From Schmidtea nova (Eukaryota), in the NCBI GenBank assembly GCA_044892505.1, contig CM097884.1, forward strand, positions 125,989,873 to 126,048,000: a stretch of 58,128 bases of DNA. Reading direction: 5' to 3'. The notes under the pieces were generated by a model, which saw only the letters and a list, made by a program, of their open reading frames with translations, did no database searches and was not told the DNA's origin. Both the position numbers and the translations under genes were made by a program. How positions within the stretch are numbered: position 1 is the stretch's first letter; each line of letters opens with the position of its first letter. Below, piece after piece: positions 26,561 to 56,769 of the stretch.

Positions 26561-29500
26561 ATATAAGTAGTATATAATTTTCCGTTTTAATTAGATTTGT
26601 AGAATATAAGAAAATAAAATTATAAATTAGCATAATAAATTAAATATAAAAGTTATTAATTAGCCTGAGTGTAAATTTCATATTTAAGAATGATTGAAAA
26701 TTGAAATATAAAATATTTATTGAATGTTTGTGTATGAATATTCCCTTTTCAATTAGTAACTCGTGCTAGCAAAAATATAAAATATAATAAAGAAAATTAT
26801 TTGAATGATATAAAAAATTTGTATTGTGTTTAAAAATAGTTTTTTTAACATTATGGATGTTCTTAATTTACGAAACAAAACAAATACTAGAACCAATCTG
26901 CCAAAATTGTAATAAATCATATTTCTGCTCTGATTCTTCATTTATAGGTGGTTGTTCATGAACTAGATTTTAATTTTGTAATGTCGATAATGTCGCAAAA
27001 TGTAGCCCAGCTTATTATACTAAAAAATGGCAGCAATTTAAGGTCATGGCCTTACAGTGCTCACAAATACCCCCCCTACATCTTTGACTTGTCCCCTCAA
27101 GTAATCCATGATTTTCTTTGAAAATACCTTTTATGAGCTAACCGCGAAAAGTTTATTTGTCTTGGTTGTTATGAATAAAAAGATGTTTTGGAATTTCACC
27201 TTATTTATTATATTAGACTCCAATTATTGAGCACACCATGCATTTAAATCAGATATATTAATTATATTTTAATAAAACAATTTTTTAGGTTTTTTAAAAA
27301 TAATGTACTCGATTTTGGTATGTATGAATTGCTTTAAAGCTAAAGAAGAATATTTGAGTTAGGATCACGGAAATGTTTTTTAATACTATAAATTAAGAGG
27401 ATTTAATTTTGTGTTACTGAAATAAATATTATTTGGAAATTTAATTATGAGTTTTTATTGTACCGATTAAAATGATGTTGCAACTAACAATGACAATCAT
27501 ATTATATGTATCAACCCGTATATTTTTGCCAAATCATCTTTAATATATGAGCCATATTTTACACAATAATCAAACAAAAAATGCTGAAACATGAAAGAGA
27601 GAATAGCGTGACCTTACTGTAATGTAGACTTAACTAATTTCAAACAAATGATAATATTTGTATTTACTATTTCTGGCTTCATTTTATAAAATTTATCATC
27701 CGAATAACAAATTTTAGGATCTTTTTTTAAATATCAGTAAGATTTAAATTANNNNNNNNNNNNNNNNNNNNNNNNNNNNNNNNNNNNNNNNNNNNNNNNN
27801 NNNNNNNNNNNNNNNNNNNNNNNNNNNNNNNNNNNNNNNNNNNNNNNNNNNNNNNNNNNNNNNNNNNNNNNNNNNNNNNNNNNNNNNNNNNNNNNNNNNN
27901 NNNNNNNNNNNNNNNNNNNNNNNNNNNNNNNNNNNNNNNNNNNNNNNNNNNNNNNNGATGACTATAGATCAAAATTTTTTTTTAAACAATAAAAAAAAAT
28001 TGATCTATAGTCATCATTATGAGAATTATTGATAATAATAATAAAAAAAGATCNNNNNNNNNNNNNNNNNNNNNNNNNNNNNNNNNNNNNNNNNNNNNNN
28101 NNNNNNNNNNNNNNNNNNNNNNNNNNNNNNNNNNNNNNNNNNNNNNNNNNNNNNNNNNNNNNNNNNNNNNNNNNNNNNNNNNNNNNNNNNNNNNNNNNNN
28201 NNNNNNNNNNNNNNNNNNNNNNNNNNNNNNNNNNNNNNNNNNNNNNNNNNNNNNNNNNNNNNNNNNNNNNNNNNNNNNNNNNNNNNNNNNNNNNNNNNNN
28301 NNNNNNNNNNNNNNNNNNNNNNNNNTAATTAGAGAAAAATTAAGTCATTATTTTTCATTTAGAAAACTAAATTCAATGATTCCAACCCCTCCACGCAGCA
28401 ATCTCAAAGCAGTTTCACAAGTCTTCATTTTGACAAACGGTCAGAATCCATTTCCCAGAATAAAAACAATCCTCAAATTCAAGAAAACTGAAAAGCTAAA
28501 AATATAAATAAATTATTCCAAACCATTTTATTTATCTTTATCAATTTACACTACAATCATTCGTTTATTTGTAATAATAATTTATTATGCTAATAATGAA
28601 TGTAACATCATAGATGATAAATATTTAATATTATTTTCTTTTGTTAATATTGTGTTGTTTTATATTTATGAATTGCAAATATATTTTGTAGAAGTTATTA
28701 TGATTTTATATAACTATTTTTTAACATAAAAAGAAATTTGCATAATTATTTTTAATTGTGAAATCTTAAAAATAATAAAGTACCGTTTATTTTGAAAATG
28801 AGACAAGTCCATTTGATTATCTTTAATTTTCTTAAGACATTTTTAAACTACATTTTGTATAACTGCAAAACACACAAAAGCTGGCTACATTAAGGTCGAT
28901 GTTTGTTTGAACTTTTAATGAGCTTTTTAAAGGTTATCACGAAGGTTATCAACTTCAGGACGTTAATCGCCATGGATGTTCCAAGTTACTGCTATCAATA
29001 GGTTAGAAATCTTTCTATTCACTAGACGTGTTAAGCAATAATTGTAATCTTGCTCGGAACTAGATTCGAAAGACTTGATCCTTGATCTTAAGGGAAAAAA
29101 TTGTAGAGGTCAAGGTTATATTAAAAGGTTTTAACAAAAGTCGATTATTAATTTTTATTTTATGTTCTCTATTTTGTTGCTGACCCCATATCATATATAT
29201 TCAAGCTAAATACAAAATTTTTCAAATAATTCAGCCTTGAAATCTCTCTGTCGTGTTCCATTGGTAACTATCCTAGGCACTGCAATAATGGTACATGCTC
29301 GGTCACACTAATAATTTTATTAAAAGAAATCATCAAGTGTCAATAAATTCGTTAGGAAAAATTGCAAATGTTATTTTATAGTTTAAATGAAGCCAACAGA
29401 TAATATTGCTGGGTTCATGGACGGGTTGGTAAAGAGGCTAATGATGGCTAGGGATCTCCCATCCATGATCATGCATAAAATGTCGTAAGTTACACTCGAG

Positions 29501-29841
29501 CGCCCTTGATTATTTCCCTTGATAACCAAGTTGGTGATGCGCAGGGTGATTAAACAATGAGGGGCATGTGAGCACTATTGCTAGGACTACTCCCCCTTTA
29601 TGTTTACGGGTTCACGCGGCCGTGGAAGGACTTACGCAATTATTGTTCTATTGTGTGTGTGATGTCATGTAATTATCAAAAACAAAATTTAAGCACAACG
29701 AAACTACTAATACGATAATACTTAAGCTACTCCTTTCGTTGTGTGACGGGTAATTTAAATTTAATTAAATGAATTAGGTAATTGAAGGAAAACATCAGAA
29801 ATAACAACAACAAAACAAAACGAGTAAAAATTTAATTGAGT

Positions 29842-30449
29842 TCAAATTCTGACATCGTATTTTATTTGTAATATAAATTCTTTGAATATTCCTTCAGGAG
29901 GGAACATCTCTGCTAACCACTCGGCTTCCGACATTTCTGCCATCGTGGTTACTTGTGTCCGCAATTGCTGGGAAAACAGCTTCCTTTGGCGACGGCGCTT
30001 GGAGCCGATTCGTTTTCGCTTATTCGGTTTTCCGGCGGGAGTTGGTGCAGTGGTGGTTTCCCCCCGACTCTGCGTCGTTGTTGCCTCGAGTCCATCGGTG
30101 TCTGTACTGATTGAGCAGGCCACTTTCCGTTCTCCTACCCAATTCTGGTAAGTAATGGGTCGGATTTGTGCTTTTAATTCGGACTCGATAAACGAAGTCG
30201 TCACCGAATGGAGGCATCGGCGCAACTCAATTTTTGTTGCTTCCCATTCGGTGCGATAATCGTCAGCTGTCCTTTGAGCCCTTTCTGTCCGACTCATCTG
30301 CTCCTTCATGCGAGCTGGTGCGAACCAGCTGGTCCGTAAATGCTGAATCTGAGCTTCTGCTTTGGCTCGTAAGGCTTTTTCTTGGTTTAGCTCCTTTTCC
30401 AATGCTCGGCGGGTTCTCCACGCCTTGTCCAATTCTCGCTGTTGGCTAG
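29842..30449 (-). CDS. LTR-encoded ORF B, 3' LTR copy: coiled-coil plus basic R/K-rich segment; likely start MTETSQQ
   Basis: ORF track 29842-30537. The internal ATG at 30449 follows ttgttatttag|T. KPNKRKRIGSKRRRQRK is NLS/RNA-binding-like. The protein is identical in both LTRs. Confidence 0.55.
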
Positions 30450-30651
30450 TTTCCGTCATACTAAATAACAAACCCAATTTATAATGCATCAAACATGTTA
30501 CCAAGATTAATATTATCCGTCGAAGGTAAAAAATCACATGATTAAATAAATAGAAATAATTTTAACTAAGGAAAATCAAAAAAAAAAAACACGGATCAAC
30601 ACCATTTAATTTATTGAAATCATTTAGTTTATAAAAATGTGAATATAATGT

Positions 30652-31152
30652 TTAGTGGAAAACACTTCGCTTGAGGCCGTGAACGGGAGTAATATGCAAC
30701 CCGTGATTGACTGGATTTCTTCGGATGTGAGCCATCGAACAGTTTAGTTTGGGGCGTCCATGGCACGTTTTCGGTAGGTGATTCGGAATCAATCCGAATT
30801 TAAGCAACTTGAGCGGTGAGACATATCCCCAATAGATCACTGTCGTTGGATTTCCTTCGCTGTCTGACACCACTATGACGAACAGAGCTGTCGTCTCCCG
30901 GTCTCTTTCGTCCTGAATTTCCCATCCGGGGCCTCCTCGATATACGATGGTATCCAATCCCCCGGTCCAAATTGAGAATGGACATTTCTTTCCTAGTTCC
31001 CACCGCCATTTATACATCAACGCATTTAGCGTTCTGAGGAGTTCCTGTGGGAGCGACTTCAATTTCTGCTGTTGCGTCCGGATTAGAGGATTTTCGACCC
31101 GTGCCGCCTGACGTTGAGTTGTTAGAAATTTATCCAGTATCGTTGCTTTCAT
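30652..31152 (-). CDS. LTR-encoded ORF A, 3' LTR copy: 166-aa unknown protein
   Basis: Open 166-codon frame with higher GC than its flanks; the ATG directly follows tttttttttatcag|. Confidence 0.5.
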   Translation of the reverse strand: MKATILDKFLTTQRQAARVENPLIRTQQQKLKSLPQELLRTLNALMYKWRWELGKKCPFSIWTGGLDTIVYRGGPGWEIQDERDRETTALFVIVVSDSEGNPTTVIYWGYVSPLKLLKFGLIPNHLPKTCHGRPKLNCSMAHIRRNPVNHGLHITPVHGLKRSVFH

Positions 31153-32033
31153 CTGATAAAAAAAAATATAATGCTAATAAATTTTATTGTGACGAATCCG
31201 TAAATTTTGGTGGGACCTGATAAAAATGCTCTGCTCGTTGATCAATAACACAAAAAAATGTGAAAAGGAGGAATAAAAAAAATATTTTCCAAACTAGTCA
31301 ATTAACACCGTCGCTATGTACAGCGATCGGAATATTAAAATTTTACATATTGTTACCTGCGCTATGTACAGCGATCAGGTTACGATTTTACTTGTTTAAT
31401 CCGTAATGTCGATCCGAACATGTCGTTATTTATGTCTAAATTAAACCATAGTTGAAACATCGAAATCGTCTCGGTGTGTCCGGACATTATTTCGATTAGT
31501 TATGTTGATTCACAAAAATTCGCGTGTAGATGGAAAAAAAAATCGATCTAGTCGACCTGATAATTGATATTGTAGTTTGTTTTCGCCTATCTGATCGAAT
31601 ATTAATGTTAACCACTGTCTACAAAGTGTCCTTGTCCCTGCACAACTTTACCGTACCGTGAAACTTTCAAAACCAAAAATTTAAATCAAATAAAGAATAC
31701 CCATAAAAACTCTGCTCACCATCTTGTGGAACGGTGAAATCCCACATTTACGGCGTACTCCCTCGCAGCGTGAGCTACTGAGGAAGTGAATATATATGCA
31801 TAAGTAAAATAAATGAAATAATAAAATCATCAGAATCATTTACGATAAGTTATATTAAATAAAATCATAGGATCAATAAAACTTATAATGACAATCAAAA
31901 TAATTACTTCCACAGGTTTTCCAGATAGCTTTGAATAAATCGTAAAATAAACGCTTTCACAAAGTTCGTGAATTAATGTTTCTAGACAAAGTCTGTCGAC
32001 AAAATTAGTGTTGTGTTGTTATTTTCGGATCGG

Positions 32034-32636: not shown

Positions 32637-33197
32637 CTATTCGATCCTCCGGCTCGCATTGGGTTGGGTTTGAGTTCTCTCATTGATTGTAGCTAATTCG
32701 TAGTGGGTCTGAATTTGATCTAGATGTTTTCTCATACGTCTTTGGGTTCGGTTGTCTCGCCTTGATGTTTGATTGACGATGGTTTGTTTCTGTTTGAGGA
32801 TTTTTATCCGGTAGGAGGCGATCAGGATTGTGATTGCGATGGTAGTTATGCTGATTGAAAGGATTATGATGATTGCTATGATCCATTTTTCTTGATATTC
32901 TATTTCAGCTTGGGCTAGGCTTTTTATGGGCTCTCTACCTTCTTTCAGGGTTTTTTGGGTTTCTTTTAGTTTCAGTTGTTGGTTATCGAAGATTTGTTGG
33001 ATTTGATGATCTTGATTGTGGGGATATTTCTGTCGGAATTCGTTGATTTCTTTAATTACTTCTTCGATTAGGCTGTCTACTTTTTGGTAGGTTTTGTCGG
33101 GTAGAACTCGTAATTGGGTTTCGGTAAGTTGTAGATCTTCTCTCTGTAGGGTGATGGTTATTAACCATAGGAGTATTGGTATTGCGAGCTTTCTCAT
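32637..33197 (-). CDS. Accessory 186-aa type I membrane protein (signal peptide, helical ectodomain, TM, basic tail)
   Basis: N-terminal MRKLAIPILLWLITITL; TM WIIAIIIILSISITTIAITILIASY; A-rich codon use like the rest of the element. Confidence 0.75.
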   Translation of the reverse strand: MRKLAIPILLWLITITLQREDLQLTETQLRVLPDKTYQKVDSLIEEVIKEINEFRQKYPHNQDHQIQQIFDNQQLKLKETQKTLKEGREPIKSLAQAEIEYQEKWIIAIIIILSISITTIAITILIASYRIKILKQKQTIVNQTSRRDNRTQRRMRKHLDQIQTHYELATINERTQTQPNASRRIE

Positions 33198-33275: not shown

Positions 33276-34337
33276 TTACACGAGGGTTTCGTTAGGTTCG
33301 TGAAAACCTTCGTCTTGAGGTTCCACCTGATTTATGGGGAGTGGCATCCATATTACCGTACTCCTCCACATTTCCACTTCCTCTCGGTATGTGTGGGATA
33401 TCTGAATCTCTTCATCTAATAAGTATTCCAGATAGTTCGCCTGCTCTGTTAGGGTTTCTATTTGTTTTTCTAGTTCTGCTAATTTTTTCTCTCTCTCTTC
33501 TTTCTCTATCATTTCGGTCACTGCTGCTGTGATACTTGTTTCCTTTGTGGGTACTGGTTTTTCTGTTAGCTTCTTTCTCAGTTCTTCGTTTTCTTTTGTC
33601 AAGTTGGTTATGTTCTCTTCATAACTCTGTTTTGCTTCTTCCATTCTTTCTTTGGTCCTTTTTAATTCTATTTTCTTCTGGGTAATCACTCCTTGATATC
33701 CATTTATATCTCTTTTCATGTTTTCCTCCTTGTGATTCCACATTCCGGTCAGCATACCTTTTAACTGTTCTTGATTGGCTAACTCCTCTCCCATTCTTTG
33801 CACTTGATAAGTTAGTTCTTTAATTTTCTTGGCTTGTTCTCTGATGAATTGTTGTCTTTTCTTACTCCATACCTTATTTGACGCTTCTTGACTGATCTTT
33901 TGCCCTAATTCCTCTTTTAATTCGTCGATCTCTTTAAACAGTTTCCAATCATCGCTGTACGCTGTTCGTTCAATTATCTCCCTGGCTTCCTTGTAAGAGT
34001 CTTTTGCCTCTTTCTTCCAATATCTTGCTTGTTCGGTGATTGACTGAATCTTATGGTCTGTTTTTATCTGTTGTCTATCTCTATCCTCTCGTCGCTCTTT
34101 CATCATCCCTTTGTAGTATTCGTTTTGTTGTCTTAGCAGTTTGTAGACTTCTTCTATTTTTTCTCGACTTTTATGATTCGTTTTCTCGGCTTCTCTTAGT
34201 GCTTGGGTTTGTCTTTCTAATTCCTCCTGTTTTCGATAATAGGCGTGAATCCATATCCCAATCCGCTCCATGTGATTTCTGATCATTTCGTCTTGATGTA
34301 CGGTTACTTCCTGTAAGGTTACCTCTATATTTCCCAT
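33276..34337 (-). CDS. Accessory 353-aa coiled-coil protein, function unknown
   Basis: Long E/K/Q/R heptad-like ORF in the element's sense orientation; no recognisable family motif. Confidence 0.8.
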   Translation of the reverse strand: MGNIEVTLQEVTVHQDEMIRNHMERIGIWIHAYYRKQEELERQTQALREAEKTNHKSREKIEEVYKLLRQQNEYYKGMMKERREDRDRQQIKTDHKIQSITEQARYWKKEAKDSYKEAREIIERTAYSDDWKLFKEIDELKEELGQKISQEASNKVWSKKRQQFIREQAKKIKELTYQVQRMGEELANQEQLKGMLTGMWNHKEENMKRDINGYQGVITQKKIELKRTKERMEEAKQSYEENITNLTKENEELRKKLTEKPVPTKETSITAAVTEMIEKEEREKKLAELEKQIETLTEQANYLEYLLDEEIQISHTYREEVEMWRSTVIWMPLPINQVEPQDEGFHEPNETLV

Positions 34338-34448: not shown

Positions 34449-35825
34449 TTACGCCAACCATCCTTTTCTGTCTGTTTTCTCGTGCCTCTCCATCTCTATG
34501 TATAGCGTGTCTGCATACAGTTGCTCCCATAGGTTTTCTTTCCTTATAAACATTGGTTCTCCTGCTGCTAGTCCGCATTCTGTTGTTGGTTTTTCGCTTG
34601 TACTCGTATGTTTGTCTGTTTCAAAGAACTTTTCTACTGGTTTTCCTATACTTTTGATTCTTATAATGACTCCTACTTTCAAGGGCCATTCTATTAGGTC
34701 ATCGTATTCTCCTTTACATAACGAGAAGAATATTGATACGTGTGTTCCTTGTCCTCTCCCGTCTCCATTTGGGTAGACCTTCAATCTTATTTTAACCCCA
34801 TTTTTCCATAAATAAAATGGTGGGCTTATTACTGCTGTTTTCGTCATATTTCTGGCTTCTGCTAGTTTGTCTCTGAAATCTGTTACTTTCCATAGGTAAG
34901 GTGCGATTGGTAAGTCCCTTCTTTCGTCAATTTCTCGTATTAATTGATTATATTGTATTTTCATTCCTTTTCCTAATTCTTCTATGGCTATTATTTTCTT
35001 TTCCATTCTTTCGCGAGTTAGTTCAAACTGCTCTCTTGTTTCTAGTAGTAAACTCATCATTATCTTATGTGATTCTACTTCTTTTTCTAATTTCTGGATT
35101 GTCTGTTCTGTTTCTTTTGTCGTTTCGTTTGTCATTTCCACATGCGTTAGTGCTGCTTCTTCCAAGTGTTGTTTCATTGTTTTTCGCGTCCGCTTTTCCT
35201 TGCATCCATGCTTGTTATATGGACATTCTCTTGGCCTTTCGGTGCATATTTTCCAATGTTCATGTAACTTTATTTCTTCTGTTATTTCGCAATTGTTTGG
35301 ACATTTGCTTACATATTGTCCGCATACTTTCTCCTCTGTTATATTTAAGTGTTCTTCTTCGATTTTTCTCCTTGTTTCTCGAGTTTCACAATACTCGCAT
35401 GCGATTTCTTCTTCTTTACATTCTTCCTTGTGTTGTTTTCTCTTCTTTAGAGTTATTGTCTGTTGGCATTTCTCGCATTCGGCTCTCTTTTCCTCGCATT
35501 TTTCCATATGGTTTTCCAGATTACTTATTTGTCCTTGCCATGTACAAGGTGTATTTACGCACTCCGTTGTGGTGCTCATAATTTCTCTTTGGGTTGCTTT
35601 GTCCATTCTGGTTTCATCCAACACTATTTTTCCTTCCTTACATTCTGGGCATGTTGTTATTCCTGTTGCATCTAATTCTTGTATACATTTTGTACATATT
35701 CTACATCCACATATCGTTTGTCTGGGTTCTCGCAATAAATTATTACATTTTCCGCATGTGAGCCTCTTGCTCCATTTTCTGTTTTCTAATCTCAAGATTT
35801 CGATTATTCGTTCTTCTCTGTCCAT
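34449..35825 (-). CDS. TRAF: Full-length TRAF-family protein (RING, TRAF zinc fingers, coiled coil, MATH)
   Basis: RING CGKC...CGCRICTKC...CPEC; fingers such as CVNTPCTW...HMEKC and CPYNKHGC...H; MATH signature SPPFY...KIRLKVYPNGDGRGQGTHVSIFF...GEYDDLIEWP. Confidence 0.93.
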   Translation of the reverse strand: MDREERIIEILRLENRKWSKRLTCGKCNNLLREPRQTICGCRICTKCIQELDATGITTCPECKEGKIVLDETRMDKATQREIMSTTTECVNTPCTWQGQISNLENHMEKCEEKRAECEKCQQTITLKKRKQHKEECKEEEIACEYCETRETRRKIEEEHLNITEEKVCGQYVSKCPNNCEITEEIKLHEHWKICTERPRECPYNKHGCKEKRTRKTMKQHLEEAALTHVEMTNETTKETEQTIQKLEKEVESHKIMMSLLLETREQFELTRERMEKKIIAIEELGKGMKIQYNQLIREIDERRDLPIAPYLWKVTDFRDKLAEARNMTKTAVISPPFYLWKNGVKIRLKVYPNGDGRGQGTHVSIFFSLCKGEYDDLIEWPLKVGVIIRIKSIGKPVEKFFETDKHTSTSEKPTTECGLAAGEPMFIRKENLWEQLYADTLYIEMERHEKTDRKGWLA

Positions 35826-35919: not shown

Positions 35920-36276
35920 CTATGGCTCATTCGTTGAATCTGGTTCCGCTTCGTTGTTTAATCTATTTATTACCCAACTCATCCATCCTTCTTCGGATCC
36001 TTCTCTTTCTCCTCGTGTTAAATGGTTTATTTCTATTGCTTGTCTTTGATTGGTGTTGCTTATCGTTTGATTTTCCCTGGTGAGTTCAGTTATCGCTCTT
36101 TGTTGTTCCTCTATTCTGTGTAATTGTTCGAAACAATTGTTATAACTTTCTGATAGTAACATTTGTTTTTCCGCTAATTGGTTCTGTAATGAGTTGACTG
36201 TTCGTACTAATAAATCGCATTGTGCTTTCCATCTCATAGCCATAGTTATTTCGGTTGTTTCGTCCTGTTCGGTCAT
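35920..36276 (-). CDS. Accessory 118-aa coiled-coil protein
   Basis: First ORF after the polyprotein; heptad-like Q/E/L pattern; same TAG-AAA-ATG start context as its neighbours. Confidence 0.65.
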   Translation of the reverse strand: MTEQDETTEITMAMRWKAQCDLLVRTVNSLQNQLAEKQMLLSESYNNCFEQLHRIEEQQRAITELTRENQTISNTNQRQAIEINHLTRGEREGSEEGWMSWVINRLNNEAEPDSTNEP

Positions 36277-36402: not shown

Positions 36403-39400
36403 CTATACCATCATTATCGTCTTTTCTTCGTATCGTTCTTCCTCTTCTATTTGTTTCCAGAATTCTTTACCTTTCGTTCTTCTTTGAAATTCTTTCTGTA
36501 TCTCCTCTGGTATTTCTATTCCTAGTTTCATGATTTTAATATCTGGCCATTGTATGGCTGTCGCTTTGTTTCTCTTTCTGTATCTCCAATATACTATTAT
36601 GCTTGTCGTCAGTATTCCATATGCTATTAATATTCCTATACTCATTAATCCTATTATTGTTTTTCCACTGTTTGTTTCTCTTTTATTCTGGTTCGCTTTT
36701 ATCTCATTTTGGGTTTGAGCCTCTGGCTTCTTCTCTTTCGGTATTTGACTCTTGACTTTGTTCATTACTTCTTGGGTAGACCAATGGTGGTTTAGTAGTT
36801 GTTTGACGTCATTTTTCGTCGTCTGGTTTTCTACGCCTCCTGGTTCGGTCTGTTGTGATAGTTTCTCTGAGATCTGATATAATCCGCATTCTGGTTTTTC
36901 TGAACCTTTTCTGGTGAAGGTACATATCGCGTATGTCCTATTTACTTCCATTTTCTTTAATTCGACTTTTTCTTTATTCTTTATTTCTTTACAGTGGGTT
37001 AGGTTGTCTTCTTCTACTTCTGGTTTATGTTTTGTCCAACATATTACTTTAACTGTCTGATCGAGTCCTGTTAATGTCAGAGTTCTTTCTGTTTTAGTTA
37101 GTTCTTCTTCATCGAATTTCAGAGTTTCTCCTTTTTGGAATGTCTTGCAATTTTCTATTCCGGGTTGATCTTCTTGGGTTCCTTTCTCCCATATACATAT
37201 ACTTCCTTCTTCATTCATTTGTATTTCTTGTATTTCGATTTCCTTGTTTGTTCGTGATTCGTCGCTTGTCTGAACTTGGTATTCTCTTGGTTCGTTGTAC
37301 CATACCCAGCATATTTTGTTACTTTGGTTTTTTCTCCTTATTGTCATAGCCATTTGTTCTATTCTTATTCCTTTATCGATACGTTTGGACATTGCTATTA
37401 TTAATGCTATGCATACGAAATCTTGTTGGGGTGATACTTCTTCTCTCGTGTTATTTGTGCTTCTCTCCCCTTCTCCTGGTTTGTCCGTTGTGTTTTTCAT
37501 CTGAGTTGCTGGTTGATCTATTGTGTTTTTGATTTCTTTCTTTGTTGGTTTTACTCTATACCATTCAAGTCTAGGCGTTTCATATTTTTGGCATACGACT
37601 GTCTTAGGTAGCCCCGACTTCTTTTCCTTTTCTATTATGCATATCCGATGCATGGTCCCTCCATCCATTTCTTCTATTCGTATTATATCCTGGTCGGATT
37701 TTCGGATTATGCATTTTAGTGGGTTATTTTCTCCAATTGGTTCATCTTCTCTATACCAACATATTTTCTCGACTTCCTGGACATTTATTATTTTTATCCC
37801 TGTCTGTGGGTTTATTGCTTCTTCCCCATTGATTAATGTCAATATTATTGTTAGACCCAACCATTTTGAACTCTGCGGTAGGCTTCTGGTTCGCCTTTCA
37901 TATTTTTTCTCTTCTCCTTTAATCTCTTTTATTTCCTTGTCTTTGTTGTTCATTCCTAGTTTTGCGATTTTTGCTTCTTTCTTATTCCTGGTCGGTTTTG
38001 GTTCTTCTCGTGCGTTTTCTTCCAGTATTTCAACTCCATGGCTTGTATTGTATATATTTGGCCATTGGGTTGCCGATTTCCTTGGGTTTATCTTGCGTAT
38101 CCATATAGCTGATAACGCGATTATTACGGGTATGGTCGCTGTTAATATTCCTAAGCCAATTAATTCTTTGATTTGTTTATTCTCGTCTGTTTGTATAGAT
38201 TTGCTTTGGTTGAACATTATTCCGTATTGTCCTTTTAGTTTTCTCATTAATTGTTCTCGTTCCTCTTGCTTTCTTTTGACTTCTTTGATAACTTCTTCGG
38301 GTGTCCATTTTGCTTGAGGGTCGATTATTATTTTTTCTGCGTCCATTTGTTCATTCGTTTGGCTTAGTTCCCTGAATTCGAGTTTCCTTGTTATTCCTTT
38401 TGATGTCGCGTTTACTGGTGTATAGTAGGTTTCGCATCTTTCTTGTTGGTTTCTTAGTGCGTCCATTATTTCTATTGCGCATACTTCGTACTCGCTATTA
38501 AATTGTAGTTTTTCGATCTTGATTTCTTTATTTGTTTTTCTGCATTCTCTTGATTGTCTTCTTATATGTTTCTGTACTATTATCCAACATATTTCTAATG
38601 TTTTATTCTCTATTTTCCATAATGTTAGAGTTGCTGATGTTTTTCTCTCGGGTTTCGTCGTAACTTCTTGGTTTGTTGGTTGTTTATTGTTTTTAAAGGT
38701 AGTGGTGTACTTCGGTTTTCCTTTGTTTCGTTGTTTCCTTTTATTTTTCCGTGTTAACGTTTTGGTTCTTGTTCCGGATGACGTTGTATATATTCCGCAT
38801 TCTAGGTCGTTTATCGTTATCTGATCATTTTTCTTTACCAAACATATTTCGTAGGTTTGTTTACTTTCTAAACCTTTTATTTGAATCGTCGTTGTTCCTG
38901 TGTTTGTTCGACATTGTGGTGTCGTTCTTTTATTTACTTCTTTTTCGTACTTCCTCCAGCATACTCCTTTCACATTTGGTTCTATCTCTTTTATTTCTAA
39001 TGTTATGTTTACTTTCCGCTTGATTTGTTTATTTCTCTTCCTCGTTCTCCTTCTGAACTTTATTACCTCTCCAGGTTGAAATGTTTTACATTTTGTGGTA
39101 CCTTTCTTGTTCGTTTCTTTTTCTAGTAGGCATAGTTTGTACGTCTTATCTGCTTTTACTTCGGATATTTTAATTACTTTATTCGTTGTTGGTTTTCGAC
39201 TTTTCCTTATTTCGTTTACGCCGATTTCCTCGTTATTTCTCGCCCAACATTTTATGTTAGTATTCTGTGTATCTTCTACTTCTGTTATTGTCATAGTTTC
39301 AATTTCTATCCCTTCCTCTAATCGTTTTATCATTATTAGTATGAGTGCTAAACATAATACTTCCATTTGGTAGGACACTCTTTCGGTTTCGTTTGTGGCA

Positions 39401-42400
39401 ACTCTTGCTTCAGGCCTCTCTATTGTAATTCGTAGGGTTGGTGTTGTTTGCTTATCTGTTGCCTGGGGTTTTTTGTTTTCTGTTCCCTGTGTCTCTGTCC
39501 TTCCACATTTTCCGATGATGTAATCTCCTTTGGGTGACTGTTGTATTGTCATGGCTGCTTTAGGTGTTTGGTATTTTGCACATGCGATTGTGTTGTGTGA
39601 TCTTGGATGCTTTTGTTTTCTAACGGTGCATATTTTGTACCAGGTATTTAGATCCAGGTCGTTGATCTCTATGATTTCTTGCTCGTGTTTTGAGATTCTG
39701 CAATCCATCGGGCTATTTTGTTCCGTGATTTTGTCCTTTTTTGACCAACATACTCGTTCGATTCCTTTTGCGTTTTTTATTTGTATTATTGCCCTTTCTT
39801 CACATGTCATTCCTTGACTTGGATTAATTAACGTTATAATCATTGTTAGTAATAGTAATTCTGGTTTGAAGAATGGTTTTATGGTTGATTTATAACCTGT
39901 TCTTTGGGTGTCATTTTTATCTCCTTGGTCGTTTGTTCCTTGTTCTCTCTCTTCATCTCTTTGTTTTTCTTCTTCACCTTTCTTTTCTTCCTTGTCTCGT
40001 TTCTTGTCTTTTCTCTCGTTTTCCTCTTTATCGGGTGGTTCGTGATCGCTTGAATTTTCTGAGTTGTTACCGTCGTCACTATCTGTGTTGTCATCTCCCC
40101 CTGGCTCGTCGAAAATGTCGTCCTCGACATTGATTTCTTCTATCAATTTTGCGTATGCTAATGTCGTTAGATTACTTGCCTCAAATTCTTGTGTTTCTAT
40201 CTGCTCCGGTATTATTTTGTTAGTGGATTTATATTCTAAGATTTCCCTTTTGGCCTTGATCCAATTGTTGATGTATGTCTTCATTAATTCTTTCCATTTG
40301 CCTGTGTATTTTCCCTCTCTCGGGTTGTTTGTGACTCTTAGATCCTTTCTTTCCATAAACATCTTCAATATCTCTGGCCATTTATATGTTATTAGGGCAC
40401 TTCTTATACACCAGTTTTGGTTATGTTCTGTAAACTCATTAATCTTGAATGCTGGTTCGTTGGTATTCGGATTTATCCACGTAAGTATTGATTCTGTTAG
40501 TTCGACGTTGTTCATCATTGCTAGTACACTGGGTTTCCTGACCGTATCAGTTAGGTAATCTATTTCTTCCTGATTTGAGATTGTTTTAATGAAGTTGACC
40601 ATTTCCCAATTATGTGTTAGTAATGCTACATCCAAAATTGAATTATCTTTATCTGTCTTTCCTGTAAGTCCTGCACCTGCTTTGTATAGTTCTTTTAATA
40701 CCTTTGTTTTCGTTTTGGCCCTTGCTGCAAATACCATAAGTGTATCTCCTTTCTCGTCTACCATATTCATATTGCTTCCGCAATTTAGCATTACTCTTGC
40801 AATTTCCATTACTTTTCTATCTTTGCCATTTCGTAGAGCTCTGTGTATGGGCATTATTCCGTCCTTTGGTAGTAAAAATGTTACTGGCATCTCCTTTTTT
40901 ATAGTTGTTATGTCGTTACCATTGTATGTTCCTTTTGCGTATGCGTGTACTTTTTCAACTAATGCACCGAGTATTTCCAGTGCATGTTTACTATTCTCAA
41001 ATTCCGGTAACAATTCTTTTGCTTTTTCTTGTATCGCATCTAGTCTAGCTTGGTATGGTGCTTCTGCTTTGAAGAGTGGTGTGAGTTTCTTGTTGCTTTC
41101 TCTTTCTTTTTTCTCTAAAACCTGTTTGCATTTTTCGGGATGGTTTAAAATTTTTACTAATTCCTCATATTCGCTTACTATTGTCTGGTATTTCTCGTTA
41201 AAATTGTTTATGTCTTTGTATGTTATTAGTTTGTCAAGTGGTTTCGCACACCATTTCCTAATCTTGTTGAATAAGGCTTCCTTCTCTTTATCGAATTTGT
41301 ATTCTTCTTCATTCTTTGTGATGTTTATGTTTCCTCTATCTAATAAGGTTAGTAATGTCTTCTGATCACAAGTAAATTTCAAAAGGTATCTTAACAGTGC
41401 GTTTTGTCCTTCGCTGTATACTTCGTTTATGTCTAAGACCCATGTATCATCTTCTGGTCGTTTCCATTTGATTAACTTACGGATCGTGTTGCATTTACCA
41501 ATTTTGATGGCCTCTTTGATAATGTCTCCTTTAACTAGTTCGTCTATCTCCCAAGTGGAGTTAGCTATTATGTATTTCAGCATTGGTTGGTGAGAACTCC
41601 ATATTACGTGATTTAGCACTGTTTTATCTTCTCTATCTCGTTCTGTCCAACTGAAACGGGCTTTTATCAGCAGATCTACCATTTCTTTATCCGCTTGGTA
41701 GATTGCTGCTGTCATTAATGGAGTTTCTTGTTCACGATTCCCCACGTCCAAGTTTTGGTTTGTTTCCTTTGCGATTTTTAGGAATTCTTTTGCTCTTTCA
41801 ATGTTTTTACACTGAATCGCATTATGTAAGGCTGGTTGTCCTCCTACATCTTTTAATAAGAGTATTTCAGGGATTTTTATCAATAATTCAGAAATAATTG
41901 GTTCGGTTGGTAATCCTTGTGCGTAACGGCTAATTATGTGTCTAATGTCCCTTGATATGCCTGCTTCGTCTCTAACATGCCATCTTCCCATTATCTCTCT
42001 CGCCTTCAATAGGATTTCTTTATTTCTGATTTCTTTTTGCCTTATTTCTGTTTTGTCGTCTTCGCTGGTGTTTGCTCTGAGCATGTTTATCCTGGCTGTT
42101 TGTGATCTGGTTATTATTCGATTCTCTGGTGTTGTAGTTATCGTTTTAGGCACCTTCTTACATCTGCAGGTGTTTACATATATGGGTCGTATTAACGGTC
42201 GATTTATTAGCTTAACTTTGACATTGTTGTCCTTTTTGTATATAATTTCATAAGGTCCTCTTCCAGGTCTTTGGAGTTTCTTAACAGTTCCTGGTATTAT
42301 TTCGGGAGTTTCTATTATCACCCAATCTCCTGGTTTTAGGTCGTTCGCTTTAACATTTTTCTTCTGGTCGTGTAAATCCTTATAACTTTCCTGATAAAAT

Positions 42401-45400
42401 TTAATGTTGAGTTCTGCCGTTTTCCATATTTCCTGCATCCTTTCTTTGAATTTGGTTACGTAGTCGTCGTCTTCCATATATTGCGATAATGGTGGCTGGT
42501 ACTCCAAATCTATGGGCATGTTGCATTCTCTGCCATACATAAGTTGAAACGGGCTTAGTTTTGTTGCGGCATGTATCGACATTCGGTATGCCATTAAACA
42601 TAATTTTATGTATTCATCCCAGTCAGTTTGGTGTCTGCTGACGTAATTTGATAACATTCTAATCAATGTGCCGTTGAATCGCTCCGTTTGTCCATTCGTT
42701 TGCGGGTGATATGGTGAAGTTCTCAATTTCGCTATTCTGAAATAGTTCGTCACCTCGTTTAATAACTCACTCATAAAATTAGTTCCTTGGTCTGTGAGTA
42801 TTTGTTTTGGAGTTCCATATCTGCAGCATATTTCTTCCACTAGAATTTTTGCTACGGTTTTTGCTTTTTGATCTTGCATGGCAAATGCTTCCGGGAATTT
42901 CGTCAGGTAATCCGTTATTACCAGTATGTAAATGTTTCCGTTTAAGCTTTCTGGTAATGGTCCTATTACGTCCATTGCTATAGTTGTCATTGGCTCTGCT
43001 GGTATCGGCATTGGTTGTAGCGGGTTCTTCCATTTCTTCCCACTATCCTTTCTAGTTGCGCAAGTTAGACAATTTTTAATCCATTCTTTTATATCTTCTT
43101 CCATTGTTCGCCAATAATATTTTTGTCTCATCCGATTTATTGTCTTTTTCTCTGACATATGACCTCCTAATTTCCCATCATGGTACTGGATCATTATCTC
43201 TTTCCTTCTGTTTTCCGGTAAACACATCAATCTCTTTTCTCCGTTTTGTATTAACAACCATCCTTTATTTATTATGTAGCGATGTTGATATTTTCCTATA
43301 TGTTCCTTTAGTTCCTTATTATCCTTGAATACCTCCATGTTTCGAGATGTTAGGAACTCTATGATCTGTCCCAATTCTTTGTCTTCCTGTTGATCTTTCT
43401 TTAACTCACTAAAGTCCAAATCTTCCGCTATTAACACACAAATTCGTTGTACATCAGGATCGGTTAATTCCGGAAATGTCAGTCTTGACATACAATCTGC
43501 ATTCGCATTCGCTTTTCCTGATTTAAATTTTATGTCCGGTGAGTACTCCTGTAACTGCATTGCCCATCGCATTAATCTACTGGATGTTTCCTTATGTTGT
43601 CCTAACCACACAAGCGGTTGGTGATCTGTGGTTATACAGATGATGTGTCCCCATAATAAATATTTAAAGTGTTTAATTGCTAGTATAATTGCTAACGCTT
43701 CTCGCTCGGTTACTGAGTAATTTTTCTCATGCTTTTTGAATGTCCGGCTATAATATCCGATTACACGTTCTTTTCCTTCATCGTCGTATTGTCCTAATAC
43801 TGCTCCTGCTGCATATCCGCTTGCATCCGTTGCAAGTAGGAATGGCTTCTTGAAGTCTGGGTGTACCAATATGGGTGCGGTTATCAGTTTATCTCTCAAT
43901 GTTTCAAAGGCTGTTTGCTGTTCATCTCCCCATATGAATGATACATCTTTCTTTACCAGCTCCTGTATAGGTTTTGCAATTCCGGCGTAATCTTTTATAA
44001 ACTTTCTATAATATCCACATAATCCAAGAAATTCTTGTATCTGGGTTATTGTTTTTGGTACTGGACATTCCTTTACTTTGTCGATATTTCTAGGATCCGG
44101 TTCTTTTCCTTTTGCTGACACTATATGTCCTAAAAATGTTACTTTCTCTTTCGCCCAATCACACTTGGATGGCTTGAGTTTTAACTTCCATTGTCTAAGT
44201 CTAACGAATACATCTCGAATATCCTGTATGTGTTGTTCAAACGTGCTAGAGTAGATTAATAAGTCGTCGATGTAGACCATACACTGCTTTATTCCATGGG
44301 TGACAAAATTCATGCATCTCTGAAATGATGCTGGTGCGTTTGTTAATCCAAAGGGCATCTTTCGAAATTGATATAGGTCTCTACCGATGGTAAAGGCAGT
44401 TTTCTCTTTATCTTCTTCCTTCATTTTTATTTGCCAGTATCCGCTTTTCAGATCTAGTGATGTAAAATATGCTGCTCCCTGTAATGTTAGTAGCATTTCG
44501 TTGATGTCTGGTAATGGGTAAGTATCTCGTTTTGTCACTGTATTCAATCTTCGATAATCTATGCAGAATCTCTGTGTTCCGTCTTTCTTCTTTACCATTA
44601 CTACTGGAAATTGCCAGGGTGAACAACTTGGTTCGATTACTTCTGCATCCAACATTTTCTTCACTTCTGCTTCTGCTACTGCTTTCTGTGCTTCCGCTAA
44701 TTTGTACGGCCTTAATGCAATTGGTGTTTCATCTGTTAATGGTATTGTATGTAGTGTGACATCACATGTTCCTAGATCCAAATCGGATGCTGCAAATATA
44801 TCCTTATACTCTATCAGGAGTTTTTCTAGCTGCTTCCTTTGATCCTCATTTAATAATTCACTGTCGATATTCCAGGTTGGTTCTTTATCTTTCTCTGCCC
44901 CTGCTATTGGTAGTTCGATATCCATCATTGGGGTTAATTTACCTAATCTTTCGTTTTCGTAGATTATTTTATCCTCTTCGTCGAAATTTACCACGTTTAT
45001 TGGGATTTCTCCATTATCATTTATGTTGACTAATCCTCTTGCCATTGGCAACGCTTTTCTTTTCTCGAATCTCTTACTTGGTTCGAAAATCATATCGCCT
45101 TGGATTGTCGGATCTATTTTTACGTAACATATTTTTTCCTTTCTTGCCGGTATTATCATTTGCTTTGAACTTGTCACTTTGGCTTCTATTGCGCATATTT
45201 GTCCTGTGCGATCCTTTAGTCTCATTGTTCCGAGGTCGATTACAATCTCTTTAAATAGTGCTGGCATCAAATCTGTTCCGATAATGCAAGGTACGCTTAA
45301 TGCTGGTATGACAGCTACGTACGTATCGATTTCCGTATTTAAGTGGCGTATTTTTACCCACCATCTTCCTGCTACTTCCACAACTTCTTTGCTACATGCA

Positions 45401-48400
45401 ATTACATGGACGTTTGTCCTTTCTATATCTCGTCTTTGCTCTTGTGGTATCCATTTGATGTCGATGGCGGAAATGTTTGCTCCAGTGTCGATCATTGCTT
45501 CGATTTCTCTTCCGTTAATTTCTATTGTCGTGGTTAGTACTGGGCCTGTGTTTGATGACATTACTGCGATCGTATGTGCGTCTCCTTGTGGATCTACACT
45601 TCTACATCTTCTCATTTTATAATCTTCTGGTATCATGGGGTATACATTTGTCATTGGCAACATTTGCATCGTGCTATTTTTTCCTCCTTGTAGTGGTTCT
45701 TGATACATTGTTGGCGGAGGTGCGTAACATTTCCATGCGTCGGCTGGATTCTTTTCGATGTATCGTGGTGCTTGGTTCTTGTACACTTGTCCTCCCTTAT
45801 AGTCGTCGTCGTCATCATCGTCGTCACTCGAATCATTTTGGGTTTTATATCCTTTCACCCTCTCCCATAAACCTTTTCTTTCTCTCTTGAGCTGTTGTCT
45901 TGCTTGTTCGTCATTCATTATCTTTTTAAATTTTCGTCCTACTTCTTCATCTGTTCCCTTCATTTTTGCTAGTATCTTTAGGAGTCTTTTTATTCGATGG
46001 ATATCTTTTGAGTGTCCATGCAACACCATTGTTTTCGCAAGGAATGGTAAAAACCCTACTATCATTTTCCAATTCACTTTCTTTTCTCTCTTGTATATAT
46101 CGAAACACGCTAACATTTGCGTTATTATTACTCTGACGATTTGGATTATTAATATGACCCCCAGTATTCCCGCCATCATTTGTCCAAATATCAGGAATCT
46201 TCCCCACATTGCTTTCATCATATTTTCTGTGGCTTTCTTGAAATGTGCTGGTGACAACAACAGTTCATAATTCGGTCCTTCTCGATAATCCGTTCCTCCC
46301 GTTATTGTTACGATATTTGATAGTAATGCTTCTCTTCTCGCTGGAAATAATATATTCTGCCTTGCTGCTTCTAAATCCTTTGGACTATATATTCCGTTAT
46401 TTGAGACATCCACGTCGCTGAATTGCCTATCCTTTGACAACTGCATTAGCTCGAATTCTCTTGGTGCTATCACTTCGGATCTTCCTGGGAACATAACCCA
46501 TTTACCATCTGGTTTCTGATAAAGTGGTCCATACGCATTACTACAGTTGAATGGATTTGGTTCAAACCCTGGTGGATTGATGATTCTCGTCACTGGTTGA
46601 ACGTATCGTACTTTTCCTTTGTAGTCGATTTCTAACTCGTTTGTACAGGTTCCAGGTTTCAACTGTGTTGTTGCTGCTAACGATGCGTGTGTCTTTTCAC
46701 AAATGTATACATACATTGCTTCTCCAACCACTCTTCCGAAATGTCCTTCTCTCAGTGGTAATAATGGCATCGCACTATCTGGATTCGTAATTGCTACGGC
46801 CAACTTTGTCTTTAATATTTCTCGATTCAGTATACAATCATTGTTTATCAGATCGTAGTACACTTTTTGTAATGAGGCTTGTCCTCTATGGAATAGGAAA
46901 TCCATTTTATTATTCACATATAGGTGTAGTTTGATATCCATTGTGTCGATTTTGGGTTTCGCATTTGGCACTTCTTGTTTTGACACATATATTCCTGGAT
47001 AATTCGTTTCGTATACCGTTGTACTACACTTAAGGGTTGCTTTCCCTTTTATGAACCTCATTCCTACATCCTGATTTGTGGTTATCAACACTGTTGGTGT
47101 GGCTCTCATCTCTATCCGTCTTTCTCTATGATCTGGTTTCAGTTGTCTTTTATTCTCTAAAGCTTCCTTGAGATGCTTTGCTCTAGCTTTGTCGTCATCG
47201 TCTTCTTCCTGGAACGTTTTTCCTTGGATTTCGTCGAACTTTGCTCCTTGTAGCAGTTGTAATTGACATTCGTTCACCTTTGGTTTGTACACTAATGTTG
47301 ACATTCCCGTTTGACACATGCTCCTGTCGATTTTACACATGGATAACGTTTTCATTTCTCCCGTTGTGGGTTCGAAGAATGCTTCGTAGCTTTTTAGTTC
47401 GACTATATACGTATCCATCACCACTAAGTTGGTTGCGAGTGTTCTTAACATCGGGTACGTTTCTCCTTGACAATATCCTTCTCCTCCCGTAATCCGTCCT
47501 GCTACATAGTACGTCTGTTGCATCATCATTCCTGGCTTTCCTTTTATCTTGATTTTATCTCTTGTTGTTACTTCTCCATGTTTAAACAATGCTTCGCAGT
47601 CCTCTCCTTGTAACACGATTGGTTCTCTTTCCGTTCCTGGCATGACAATTGCTGAATAATGTCCTCTCCCGCAGTAGAATGCGAATCTCGTCTTCTGCAC
47701 CTTACATTCATTTACCATTGTCTTTATGAGTTCTGCTTCTTGATACACGTGGTACCATTGTTCCTTTTTAATCTTTTGCAACTCTACTGGAGTTGCATCT
47801 TTGCATTGCTCCGTGCCTCTCAATGAATACTTTTCTCCTAACTTCATTTGGTCGCAATCAAACACTTCGAACGCTGTTGCGCTATCGGTGCTAATCATCC
47901 ATATCAACATCATCATTATTATAGAACTCAAATTCATTGATGACTTCGCGTTTCTTGTTCCTGCTTGTTCTTTTCCTAACTCTTCCAATATTTTTTCGAA
48001 TTTCTTTTTCATATTCTTGGCTTGTGTTTTCTTCTGGTTAGTTTTTATAAATGTTTCCCATCCTCCTTTGTTAATGACGTAGGGTTCTATTTCTCTAGCT
48101 ATAATCTTTGCGGTAATTTTTATATGTCTCTCTAATGCAGTGGGTTTTGGTCGACCTCTACTCAGTGTCAACAGATTGTAGATCGTGTATGCAATAGCTA
48201 TTACGTATTTGTTATCTGTTTCCGCTCCTTCTGTCAATTTCTTTATTAACATAGTGGTTCCTTGCCAGTCTAAATGATTTGACTTCGTCTTTTCTTTTAT
48301 GAATTCCGGTAAGATGGGTGCAATTGCGCTGTGCAATGACTTCGCCTTTTCGCTTATCTCAGTTATACGCCAGTATTTTTTCAATTCCGGATCAATTATT

Positions 48401-51291: not shown

Positions 51292-51450
51292 TTTTACTGA
51301 TGGTGCATCTCCTATTTGTAAGAACGCTTATCTGGGCAGTTTCGTTACTCCTGGAATCATCTGGTTTACTTTATTGAATAGTATTTCCACCTTTTCTTTT
51401 GCGTTATATTGGAATCGAAACATATGGTCGTTGGGCATGATTACCATCAT
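49084..51450 (-). other. Three ubiquitin-like (beta-grasp) domains at ~51220-51450, ~49888-50130 and ~49084-49290
   Basis: Each starts with a hydrophobic strand, x-P-N-x-D/H, a second strand, then T/K-I/V-x-x-L/I. The best example is LKISVELPNEDTKEIEVVADCTIKELINVI...LYKIGIWDNHQTIHVI. Confidence 0.6.
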
Positions 51451-55520: not shown

Positions 55521-55961
55521 AATTTATGCTGGGTTCATGGACGGGTTGGTAAAGAGGCTAATGATGGCTAGGGATCTCCCATCCATGATCATGCATAAAA
55601 TGTCGTAAGTTACACTCGAGCGCCCTTGATTATTTCCCTTGATAACCAAGTTGGTGATGCGCAGGGTGATTAAACAATGAGGGGCAGGTGAGCACTATTG
55701 CTAGGACTACTCCCCCTTTATGTTTACGGGTTCACGCGGCCGTGGAAGGACTTACGCAATTATTGTTCTATTGTGTGTGTGATGTCATGTAATTATCAAA
55801 AACAAAATTTAAGCACAACGAAACTACTAATACGATAATACTTAAGCTACTCCTTTCGTTGTGTGACGGGTAATTTAAATTTAATTAAATGAATTAGGTA
55901 ATTGAAGGAAAACATCAGAAATAACAACAACAAAACAAAACGAGTAAAAATTTAATTGAGT

Positions 55962-56569
55962 TCAAATTCTGACATCGTATTTTATTTGTAATATAAATTC
56001 TTTGAATATTCCTTCAGGAGGGAACATCTCTGCTAACCACTCGGCTTCCGACATTTCTGCCATCGTGGTTACTTGTGTCCGCAATTGCTGGGAAAACAGC
56101 TTCCTTTGGCGACGGCGCTTGGAGCCGATTCGTTTTCGCTTATTCGGTTTTCCGGCGGGAGTTGGTGCAGTGGTGGTTTCCCCCCGACTCTGCGTCGTTG
56201 TTGCCTCGAGTCCATCGGTGTCTGTACTGATTGAGCAGGCCACTTTCCGTTCTCCTACCCAATTCTGGTAAGTAATGGGTCGGATTTGTGCTTTTAATTC
56301 GGACTCGATAAACGAAGTCGTCACCGAATGGAGGCATCGGCGCAACTCAATTTTTGTTGCTTCCCATTCGGTGCGATAATCGTCAGCTGTCCTTTGAGCC
56401 CTTTCTGTCCGACTCATCTGCTCCTTCATGCGAGCTGGTGCGAACCAGCTGGTCCGTAAATGCTGAATCTGAGCTTCTGCTTTGGCTCGTAAGGCTTTTT
56501 CTTGGTTTAGCTCCTTTTCCAATGCTCGGCGGGTTCTCCACGCCTTGTCCAATTCTCGCTGTTGGCTAG
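55962..56569 (-). CDS. LTR-encoded ORF B, 5' LTR copy
   Basis: Identical translation to the 3' LTR copy. Confidence 0.55.
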
Positions 56570-56769
56570 TTTCCGTCATACTAAATAACAAACCCAATTT
56601 ATAATGCATCAAACATGTTACCAAGATTAATATTATCCGTCGAAGGTAAAAAATCACATGATTAAATAAATAGAAATAATTTTAACTAAGGAAAATCAAA
56701 AAAAAAACACGGATCAACACCATTTAATTTATTGAAATCATTTAGTTTATAAAAATGTGAATATAATGT

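Follow-up and report, generated by a model that had tools for sequence, protein, structure and literature searches.

The giant Burro/GYPSM1 elements of planarians were reportedly described by Grohme and colleagues in 2018. Giant planarian retroelements are notable for carrying host-like regulators and an env between gag and pol, and about half of their coding capacity is unannotated. In the excerpts consulted from the review of Burro by Arkhipova and Yushenova (2019, PMC6431247), these gypsy-like long terminal repeat (LTR) retroelements possess an open reading frame (ORF) of 4,873-5,140 residues, with env in frame between gag and the protease (PR), an ankyrin region, and TRAF/MATH sequences located either inside that ORF or in an accessory ORF. 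BURRO1 is reported to be abundant, transcribed and intestine-enriched (PMC8532177). More broadly, errantivirus-type Ty3/gypsy elements with a GAG-ENV-POL order and a class III (gB/G-like) ENV occur in Platyhelminthes, Nematoda and Bryozoa and form multiple young copies in invertebrate genomes, according to the sections consulted of a recent study (eLife 2026, PMC13524379). Here we analyze an element of this kind residing in 58,128 nucleotides of Schmidtea nova DNA (assembly GCA_044892505.1, contig CM097884.1, positions 125,989,873 to 126,048,000 of the forward strand; hereafter the window). Its giant ORF ends, beyond integrase (IN), in two tandem units, designated A and B. Approximately 1,160 codons are now assigned to these units as predicted secretory-pathway, single-pass membrane proteins with modules resembling fibronectin type III (FN3) domains.

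The giant ORF (36403-51291, minus strand) extends for 4,962 codons with no internal stop, and units A and B constitute its C-terminal end (36406-39876, minus strand; ORF residues 3806-4962), together comprising 1,157 open codons. An acidic linker leads into the pair, and each unit consists of a signal-like segment, an ectodomain built of FN3-like modules, a transmembrane (TM) segment and a tail bearing QWPNI in A or QWPDI in B, 14-15 residues past the TM cores; the sequence RRTRS precedes unit B. An earlier sequence-only reading of this DNA had described just such an arrangement appended to Pol, and every one of these parts is present, in frame with Pol, within the uninterrupted ORF. The same reading placed the locus correctly but drew its bounds (36538-39866) slightly too narrowly. 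It also took A and B for paralogues, a relationship that the alignments establish far beyond chance. The two units share 31% identity over 363 residues (BLASTP, E=6e-45), and this identity is evenly spread at 21-43% per segment, with the signal-like segment, an internal hydrophobic patch and the tail included. A second BLASTP alignment (E=1e-11) pairs the fourth module, stalk, TM segment and tail of A with the third module, stalk, TM segment and tail of B; therefore, unit A corresponds to unit B plus one extra module.

Closer examination of the seven modules reveals a common framework. All seven align with an invariant C, W, C, C, in which the first Cys and the Trp lie in strand B and one Cys each lies in strands F and G, and a Tyr stands two residues before the strand-F Cys in five of the seven. 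The strand-B Trp (7/7 modules) and the strand-F Tyr (5/7) are hallmark residues of FN3 domains. When the whole window is translated in all six frames, a profile built from the seven modules matches it exactly seven times, and with hhalign this profile recovers B1-B3 at 98.8-99.6% probability; both results are partly circular, given that the profile was made from these modules. The predicted ectodomains contain every one of the 30 cysteines of A and B, with none in the signal-like segments, TM segments or tails, and their number is even per module if the extra Cys of the A1-A2 linker is counted with A1. The hydrophobic patch, which the sequence-only reading had noticed in both units, is indeed common to them (ORF residues 3976-3989 in A and 4624-4635 in B) and contains a Cys in each. 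Modules A2 and B2 lack a strand-C Cys, and the patch carries a Cys instead; from this substitution we infer that the patch is part of the module 2 fold and does not span the membrane. The patches may also be relics of signal peptides; the patch of unit A starts with Met.

The near-identity of the LTRs (99.8%) implies that this copy has had little time to decay, and homologues of A and B were not found. Both observations would suit a reading in which the C-terminal region has no membrane function and is a drifting ORF extension, open only because this copy of the element is very young. Against it, at 31% identity both units keep the signal-like segment, the C/W/C/C framework, the patch Cys, the TM segment, the basic stretch and QWP, and 1,157 open codons are not expected by chance in DNA of 35% G+C. 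Because the paralogues have kept every framework feature despite divergence to 31% identity, we hold this functionless reading to be the least likely of those considered, and a highly improbable one. Such retention is the pattern expected of purifying selection on structure.

To model the fold, AlphaFold2 was supplied with the seven-module alignment. Module A1 is predicted as a beta-sandwich, an all-strand domain of six strands, with a mean predicted local distance difference test score (pLDDT) of 84.5 and a predicted template modeling score (pTM) of 0.72. Comparison of this model with the PDB using Foldseek returns FN3 domains or FN3-derived monobodies in all of the top 50 matches, with probabilities of 0.93-1.00 and query TM-scores of 0.42-0.61 (most 0.55-0.61). 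The matched structures include monobodies, adnectins, fibronectin type III domains, insulin receptor, NCAM, BOC and neogenin. These matches bear out the proposal that the modules are FN3-like. The same model compared with the viral structure library BFVD draws generic beta-sandwich matches only and no fusogen fold, and a low-confidence model of unit B (pLDDT 42.3) renders B1 and B3 as seven-strand all-beta domains. Among sequence profiles, the sub-threshold Pfam matches that recur across modules belong to FN3-type families only, covering four of the seven modules in a single register (per module, Fn3_ELFN at E=0.073 and E=0.12, fn3 at E=0.078, Interfer-bind at E=0.015); none rises above the Pfam cut-off, and no Pfam family of any kind does so on the units or on single modules. 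PDB sequence and profile searches with A and B give no significant match, the profile search returning a contactin-4 FN3 domain at E=1.2. The FN3-like fold is thus a well-supported prediction for A1, which homology extends to the other six modules, and we regard the anatomy and FN3 fold of A and B as well supported overall.

The membrane topology was then read from hydropathy, taking a 19-residue Kyte-Doolittle mean of at least 1.6 as TM-grade. Throughout the ORF, the TM-grade segments are those of A (residues 4378-4396) and B (residues 4882-4900) and the anchor of the rhabdovirus-G-like Env glycoprotein encoded ahead of PR, together with a borderline stretch (1.64-1.67) inside the protease domain. 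Apart from the patches and a further hydrophobic stretch within the protease domain, an 11-residue scan resolves the hydrophobic segments in alternating order, namely the signal-like segment (1123-1134) and TM anchor (1705-1724) of the G-like Env itself, a signal-like segment (3812-3823) and TM segment (4382-4398) in A, and a signal-like segment (4477-4487) and TM segment (4879-4900) in B. Basic residues follow each TM segment. The layout of signal-like segment, ectodomain, TM segment and tail is accordingly found in each unit, as had been proposed. One TM segment per unit holds, and the patches, positioned between the signal-like segment and the TM segment of each unit, fall short of the TM threshold. 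Separately, the patches were considered as additional TM helices, and this was rejected: they comprise 10-11 hydrophobic residues, remain below the 19-residue threshold, are flanked by charges and carry the Cys that replaces the strand-C Cys.

Read as alternating start- and stop-transfer signals, these segments would place the ectodomains of the G-like protein, A and B in the lumen and would keep PR, reverse transcriptase (RT), IN, ankyrin and both tails in the cytosol, the tails of A and B being approximately 60-70 residues long in the predicted topology. The alternation fits co-translational insertion of a single polyprotein, and it makes the release of the units by signal peptidase, as the sequence-only reading had suggested, plausible. 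The -3/-1 positions at the putative cleavage site look canonical in A (S, G). In addition, the approximately 140 residues upstream of the unit A signal-like segment contain no Met, so that translation within the polyprotein, or splicing to an upstream start, is required. We therefore weighed the possibility that A and B, and perhaps the G-like Env too, derive from spliced or trans-spliced subgenomic mRNAs and not from insertion of the full polyprotein. In retroviruses and errantiviruses, spliced mRNA is the normal source of env, and among retroelements it would be unusual for one polyprotein of 4,962 residues to have three of its stretches translocated. Against this route stand the Met-free stretch ahead of A, the retention of the Pol frame in the window and in five relatives described below, which splicing alone would not require, and the alternation of signals and anchors, the order of which is exactly the one under which the enzymes would remain in the cytosol. 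Moreover, for a planarian nidovirus, processing of a giant polyprotein by signal peptidase and furin has been suggested (PMC6211748). We consider the spliced route distinctly unlikely, and the topology and processing of A and B within a polyprotein plausible and rather probable. Minimal furin-type RRTR sequences occur twice on the minus strand, in the A2-A3 basic linker (~39030-39066) and at the A/B junction (~37882-37900); in the proposed topology the former would be luminal and the latter cytosolic, and no conclusion is drawn from either.

A search with the Env-Pol portion of the giant ORF retrieves six metagenomic polyproteins of 2,855-3,865 residues (P0002-P0007), each with a G-like Env before PR, RT, RNase H and IN, and with 33-37% identity to the window element in Env and 41-45% in Pol. 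In five of the six (P0003-P0007), the frame continues past IN into a terminal unit made up of a signal-like segment, approximately 170-290 residues of ectodomain, a TM segment and a tail. By Pfam, these five polyproteins lack ankyrin and TRAF domains, and no Pfam family is found on their C-terminal units. Outside the TM-tail region these units show no mutual similarity, with the exception of the P0005-P0006 pair. Between these two the identity is 87-99% in the G-like protein, 64-92% in Pol and 40-48% in the C-terminal unit; in this one close pair, no part of the polyprotein evolves faster than the post-IN unit. In all seven tails, those of A, B and the five relatives, a basic stretch is followed at tail position 14-28 by the first aromatic-x(0-2)-Pro, which takes the form QWP in A and B and [K/Q][Y/F]x(1-2)PP in the relatives. 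This common motif is at most suggestive. Across the wider GAG-ENV-POL group, then, the position past integrase is a recurrent home of fast-evolving membrane proteins. P0002-P0007 also contain C2H2-type zinc fingers, situated between Env and PR, and two or three retropepsin-like domains, one of which separates IN from the C-terminal membrane unit; in the window element, ankyrin and the acidic linker stand instead at the position of that last domain.

Units A and B themselves have no homologue at E<=0.001 among 1.84 billion representative proteins (phmmer), and ORF residues 3806-4962 have no match in a word-indexed search of long polyproteins; neither collection yields an LTR element with modules homologous to those of A and B. 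The sequence-only reading knew of no LTR element with such a module. This needs qualifying: no element with homologous modules emerged from these searches, but in five of six relatives the post-IN slot is filled by a type I membrane protein of another sort. The excerpted Burro domain maps (PMC6431247) mention no signal, TM or FN3 unit after ankyrin, and the sections consulted of PMC13524379 mention neither a membrane protein past integrase nor FN3. The kind of element is itself already known. As far as the literature and databases were searched, the FN3-repeat membrane units and the recurrent post-integrase slot for membrane proteins are undescribed.

The sequence-only reading had also likened A and B to cytokine receptors of the gp130/Domeless type, in which a juxtamembrane WPxI/V(P)xP serves as a JAK-binding Box1. 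Like these class I cytokine receptors, A and B combine tandem FN3-like modules, one TM segment, a short tail and a membrane-proximal W-P motif. Unlike them, they carry the C/W/C/C framework in every module instead of four cysteines in the first domain only. No WSxWS-type motif (W[ST]xW[ST]) occurs anywhere in A or B. A proline-rich Box1 is likewise absent from both, as the motif runs QWPNIY in one tail and QWPDIK in the other and contains no second Pro, hence no P-x-P after W-P, and contain four and two prolines, respectively. No cytokine-receptor family exceeds the Pfam threshold (best Interfer-bind, E=0.015, one module), and no cytokine receptor appears in the PDB sequence searches, among the top 50 PDB fold matches or among the 1.84 billion representative proteins. 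The attractive link of A and B to JAK-binding cytokine receptors is thus corrected here as unsupported.

These results bear equally on a more general reading, namely that A and B descend from a captured host FN3 cell-surface receptor that would act as a decoy or dominant-negative and disturb host signaling. The element does carry other host-type modules, in its ankyrin region and its TRAF/MATH ORF, to which published Burro elements add BIR and BCL2 motifs (excerpts of PMC6431247); FN3 repeats, one TM segment and a short conserved tail form the layout of many animal receptors, and one module gives the weak Interfer-bind match. Set against this are the lack of any homologue of A+B at E<=0.001 among the representative proteins or among the long polyproteins, and the missing WSxWS motif, proline-rich Box1 and cytokine-receptor matches in Pfam, the PDB and the top 50 folds. 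Furthermore, the slot is common to relatives devoid of ankyrin and TRAF, which argues for an old function of the element over a recent capture. A captured receptor is in our judgment an unlikely origin.

Instead we put forward, tentatively and as an explanation that may well fail as a whole, that A and B represent variable surface glycoproteins occupying the env position of a GAG-ENV-POL element. First, A and B, which have no start codon of their own, would be translated as part of the polyprotein. Second, each signal-like segment would restart translocation into the endoplasmic reticulum (ER) and each TM segment would halt it, leaving the ectodomains luminal and later exposed on the cell or particle surface. 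Third, signal peptidase would cleave on the luminal side, and the protease of the element presumably on the cytosolic side. Fourth, A and B would serve as variable surface proteins, most likely as attachment or host-interaction partners of the much more conserved G-like fusogen. Finally, the conserved juxtamembrane aromatic-Pro motif may serve for docking in the cytosol. Of these steps, the attachment role has the least support and must be called doubtful. A fusogen role is not indicated, as no fusogen fold, fusion peptide or heptad pattern was found in A or B, where the patches are short, fall below TM grade and carry framework cysteines.

Several observations weigh against this explanation. 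A and B, like the C-terminal units of the relatives, are predicted proteins. The confident model covers a single module (A1), for which the Foldseek E-values are modest and none is better than 0.011; the model of the whole of unit B, computed by AlphaFold2 from a three-row alignment, is poor (pLDDT 42.3), and no FN3 model of Pfam reaches its cut-off on any module. The -3/-1 positions in B do not look canonical, and the ectodomains hold 11 N-glycosylation sequons, an enrichment of only about twofold. Comparison of A and B with the C-terminal units of the relatives by phmmer, module hidden Markov model, BLASTP and hhalign gives no similarity, with positive controls, and the common slot may reflect repeated independent capture and not common function. 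The tail motif was defined after the data had been seen, with a chance probability of 0.11-0.28 per tail. Lastly, receptor binding and membrane fusion are normally both accomplished by a rhabdovirus-type G alone, such that a separate attachment protein is not required.

The type I membrane layout, the fast evolution of the equivalent slot in the relatives, as expected under conflict, and the presence of two diverged paralogues that could cover two targets would also accord with superinfection exclusion or receptor interference. Here, A and B in the membrane of the expressing cell would mask or down-regulate the surface molecule used by the element. Such a function is hard to separate from that of a surface glycoprotein, as interference in retroviruses usually arises as a side effect of the very Env that binds the receptor. 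We rate it very unlikely.

If, as the surface-glycoprotein explanation holds, A and B are surface determinants, they would bear on the cell-to-cell movement of such elements, explain the fast evolution of the slot, and add a new example of a retroelement polyprotein whose membrane topology alternates. A still wider generalization, which we consider rather unlikely in full, is that GAG-ENV-POL elements of the flatworm type possess a two-part surface machinery, in which a conserved class III fusogen before pol would be joined by a hypervariable, exchangeable attachment or host-interface glycoprotein after IN. The one polyprotein would thread the ER membrane six times, and the slot would be filled here by a duplicated FN3-repeat protein. 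If true, this machinery would constitute a retroelement counterpart of the fusion-plus-attachment pairs of some enveloped RNA viruses, with a polyprotein topology in the style of flaviviruses.

The element that encodes A and B and its remaining features are collected in Table 1. The LTR copies (29407-32009 and 55527-58128) are 99.8% identical over 2,604 columns and end in CA, and a TGG that resembles the start of a primer-binding site follows the 5' copy. Gag and the giant ORF share a frame, with one stop between them (51291-51328) that may represent programmed read-through or a single nonsense change; in the relatives P0003, P0004 and P0007, gag is fused to the remainder. The giant ORF is ordered as N-terminal part, G-like Env, PR, RT, RNase H, IN, ankyrin, acidic linker, A and B, and its first ~1,100 residues (47944-51291, minus strand) match no Pfam family at E<=0.01 except for a chance-level match to RAMP. 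Four separate ORFs lie downstream. The product of the last of these, 186 residues in length, is a predicted third, small type I membrane protein, with a charged ectodomain that by eye is possibly a coiled coil. Judged by its architecture, this is a young, Burro-like element of the GAG-ENV-POL (errantivirus-like) Ty3/gypsy type, the nearest proteins compared being the metagenomic polyproteins, 41-45% identical in Pol. Rfam and tRNA scans of the window return no match. In the AT-rich flank, 4029-4266 (minus strand) holds an RT-like fragment of another retroelement, 32-42% identical to the RT of this one. The left flank (3081-28325) contains seven runs of N totaling 1,257 bases, and its G+C content is 21-31%, versus 35-41% in the element.

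Table 1. Window positions of units A and B, their predicted parts, and the other features of the element.
Feature	Positions	Strand	Remarks
Unit A	37882-39876	-	ORF residues 3806-4470; four FN3-like modules
Unit A signal-like segment	39808-39876	-	
Module A1	39547-39807	-	
Unit A linker A1-A2	39370-39546	-	
Unit A hydrophobic patch	39322-39369	-	directly before A2
Module A2	39067-39321	-	
Module A3	38776-39030	-	
Unit A basic linker	38659-38775	-	
Module A4	38407-38658	-	
Unit A stalk	38164-38406	-	
Unit A TM segment	38095-38163	-	
Unit A tail with QWPNI	37882-38094	-	71 residues
Unit B	36406-37881	-	ORF residues 4471-4962; three FN3-like modules
Unit B signal-like segment	37822-37881	-	
Module B1	37567-37821	-	
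Unit B linker	37426-37566	-	
Unit B hydrophobic patch	37381-37425	-	
Module B2	37126-37380	-	
Module B3	36862-37104	-	
Unit B stalk	36661-36861	-	
Unit B TM segment	36592-36660	-	
Unit B tail with QWPDI	36406-36591	-	
Acidic linker ahead of unit A	39892-40146	-	85 residues; 39% D+E
Burro-like giant LTR retroelement	29407-58128	-	~28 kb; 3' LTR starts at 29407, 5' LTR is cut off by the window end at 58128
gag ORF, CCHC zinc knuckle	51328-53310	-	660 residues; Pfam zf-CCHC E=6.3e-9; resembles gag part of relatives
Rhabdovirus-G-like (class III) fusion glycoprotein	46111-47943	-	Pfam Monjiviricetes_fusion E=5.3e-63 at residues ~1394-1734; in frame before PR
PR-RT-RNase H-IN core	41980-45546	-	Pfam RVP, RVT_1, RT_RNaseH, Integrase_H2C2, rve
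Ankyrin-repeat region after IN	40612-41829	-	Pfam Ank_2 E=1e-14
Accessory ORF, hydrophilic, without confident family	35920-36276	-	118 residues
TRAF-like accessory ORF (TRAF zinc finger and MATH)	34449-35825	-	Pfam MATH_2 E=8.4e-21; zf-TRAF E=2.3e-6
Accessory ORF, hydrophilic	33276-34337	-	353 residues; weak coiled-coil-type Filament match E=7.6e-4
Last accessory ORF	32637-33197	-	186 residues; own ATG, N-terminal signal-like segment, one TM segment (19-residue Kyte-Doolittle maximum 2.80), basic tail

Comparison with the described systems defines what is shared and what is particular to this locus. Like Burro, the element is near 30 kb in length and combines an ORF of ~4.9-5.1 thousand codons, an env-like glycoprotein between gag and PR, ankyrin, TRAF/MATH and AT-rich flanks. 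It departs from Burro1 in that no BIR, BCL2, SUMO-like or dUTPase domain is found in the window by Pfam at E<=0.01, and from Burro more generally in that its gag is set off by one in-frame stop. Its TRAF/MATH sequence lies downstream of pol, whereas in the published Burro elements it is found in the polyprotein or in an upstream ORF (excerpts of PMC6431247).

Two systems beyond Burro offer partial parallels. The planarian secretory cell nidovirus encodes a single giant polyprotein with host-like ankyrin and fibronectin type II modules, for the C-terminal structural part of which cleavage by signal peptidase and furin has been put forward (Saberi et al. 2018, PMC6211748). That system is an RNA virus of unrelated sequence, with fibronectin type II and not type III modules, and the parallel is by analogy only. 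The sORF2 proteins, small transmembrane proteins of Drosophila LTR retrotransposons belonging to the MDG1 group, have been linked to cell-to-cell spread (bioRxiv 10.1101/2025.03.14.642691). Like sORF2, units A and B are accessory membrane proteins that an LTR retrotransposon encodes besides gag-pol; unlike sORF2, which is short, FAST-like and encoded by a separate ORF, they comprise 490-665 residues with FN3-like ectodomains. The 186-residue product of the last accessory ORF is nearer to sORF2, a likeness by size alone.

The env genes that retroviruses and insect errantiviruses carry downstream of pol resemble A and B in their position past IN, in their order of signal, ectodomain, TM segment and short tail, and in the fast evolution of the slot relative to pol. 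They differ in being separate, spliced ORFs, whereas A and B are in frame with Pol; A and B, moreover, lack a fusion-protein fold or heptad pattern, and a class III fusogen is already present upstream. Finally, like the GAG-ENV-POL errantiviruses, the window element and P0002-P0007 are ordered gag, class III fusogen, pol. What sets them apart from the described GAG-ENV-POL elements is a second type I membrane protein, and here also a third, in frame after IN, in five of the six relatives as well as in the window.

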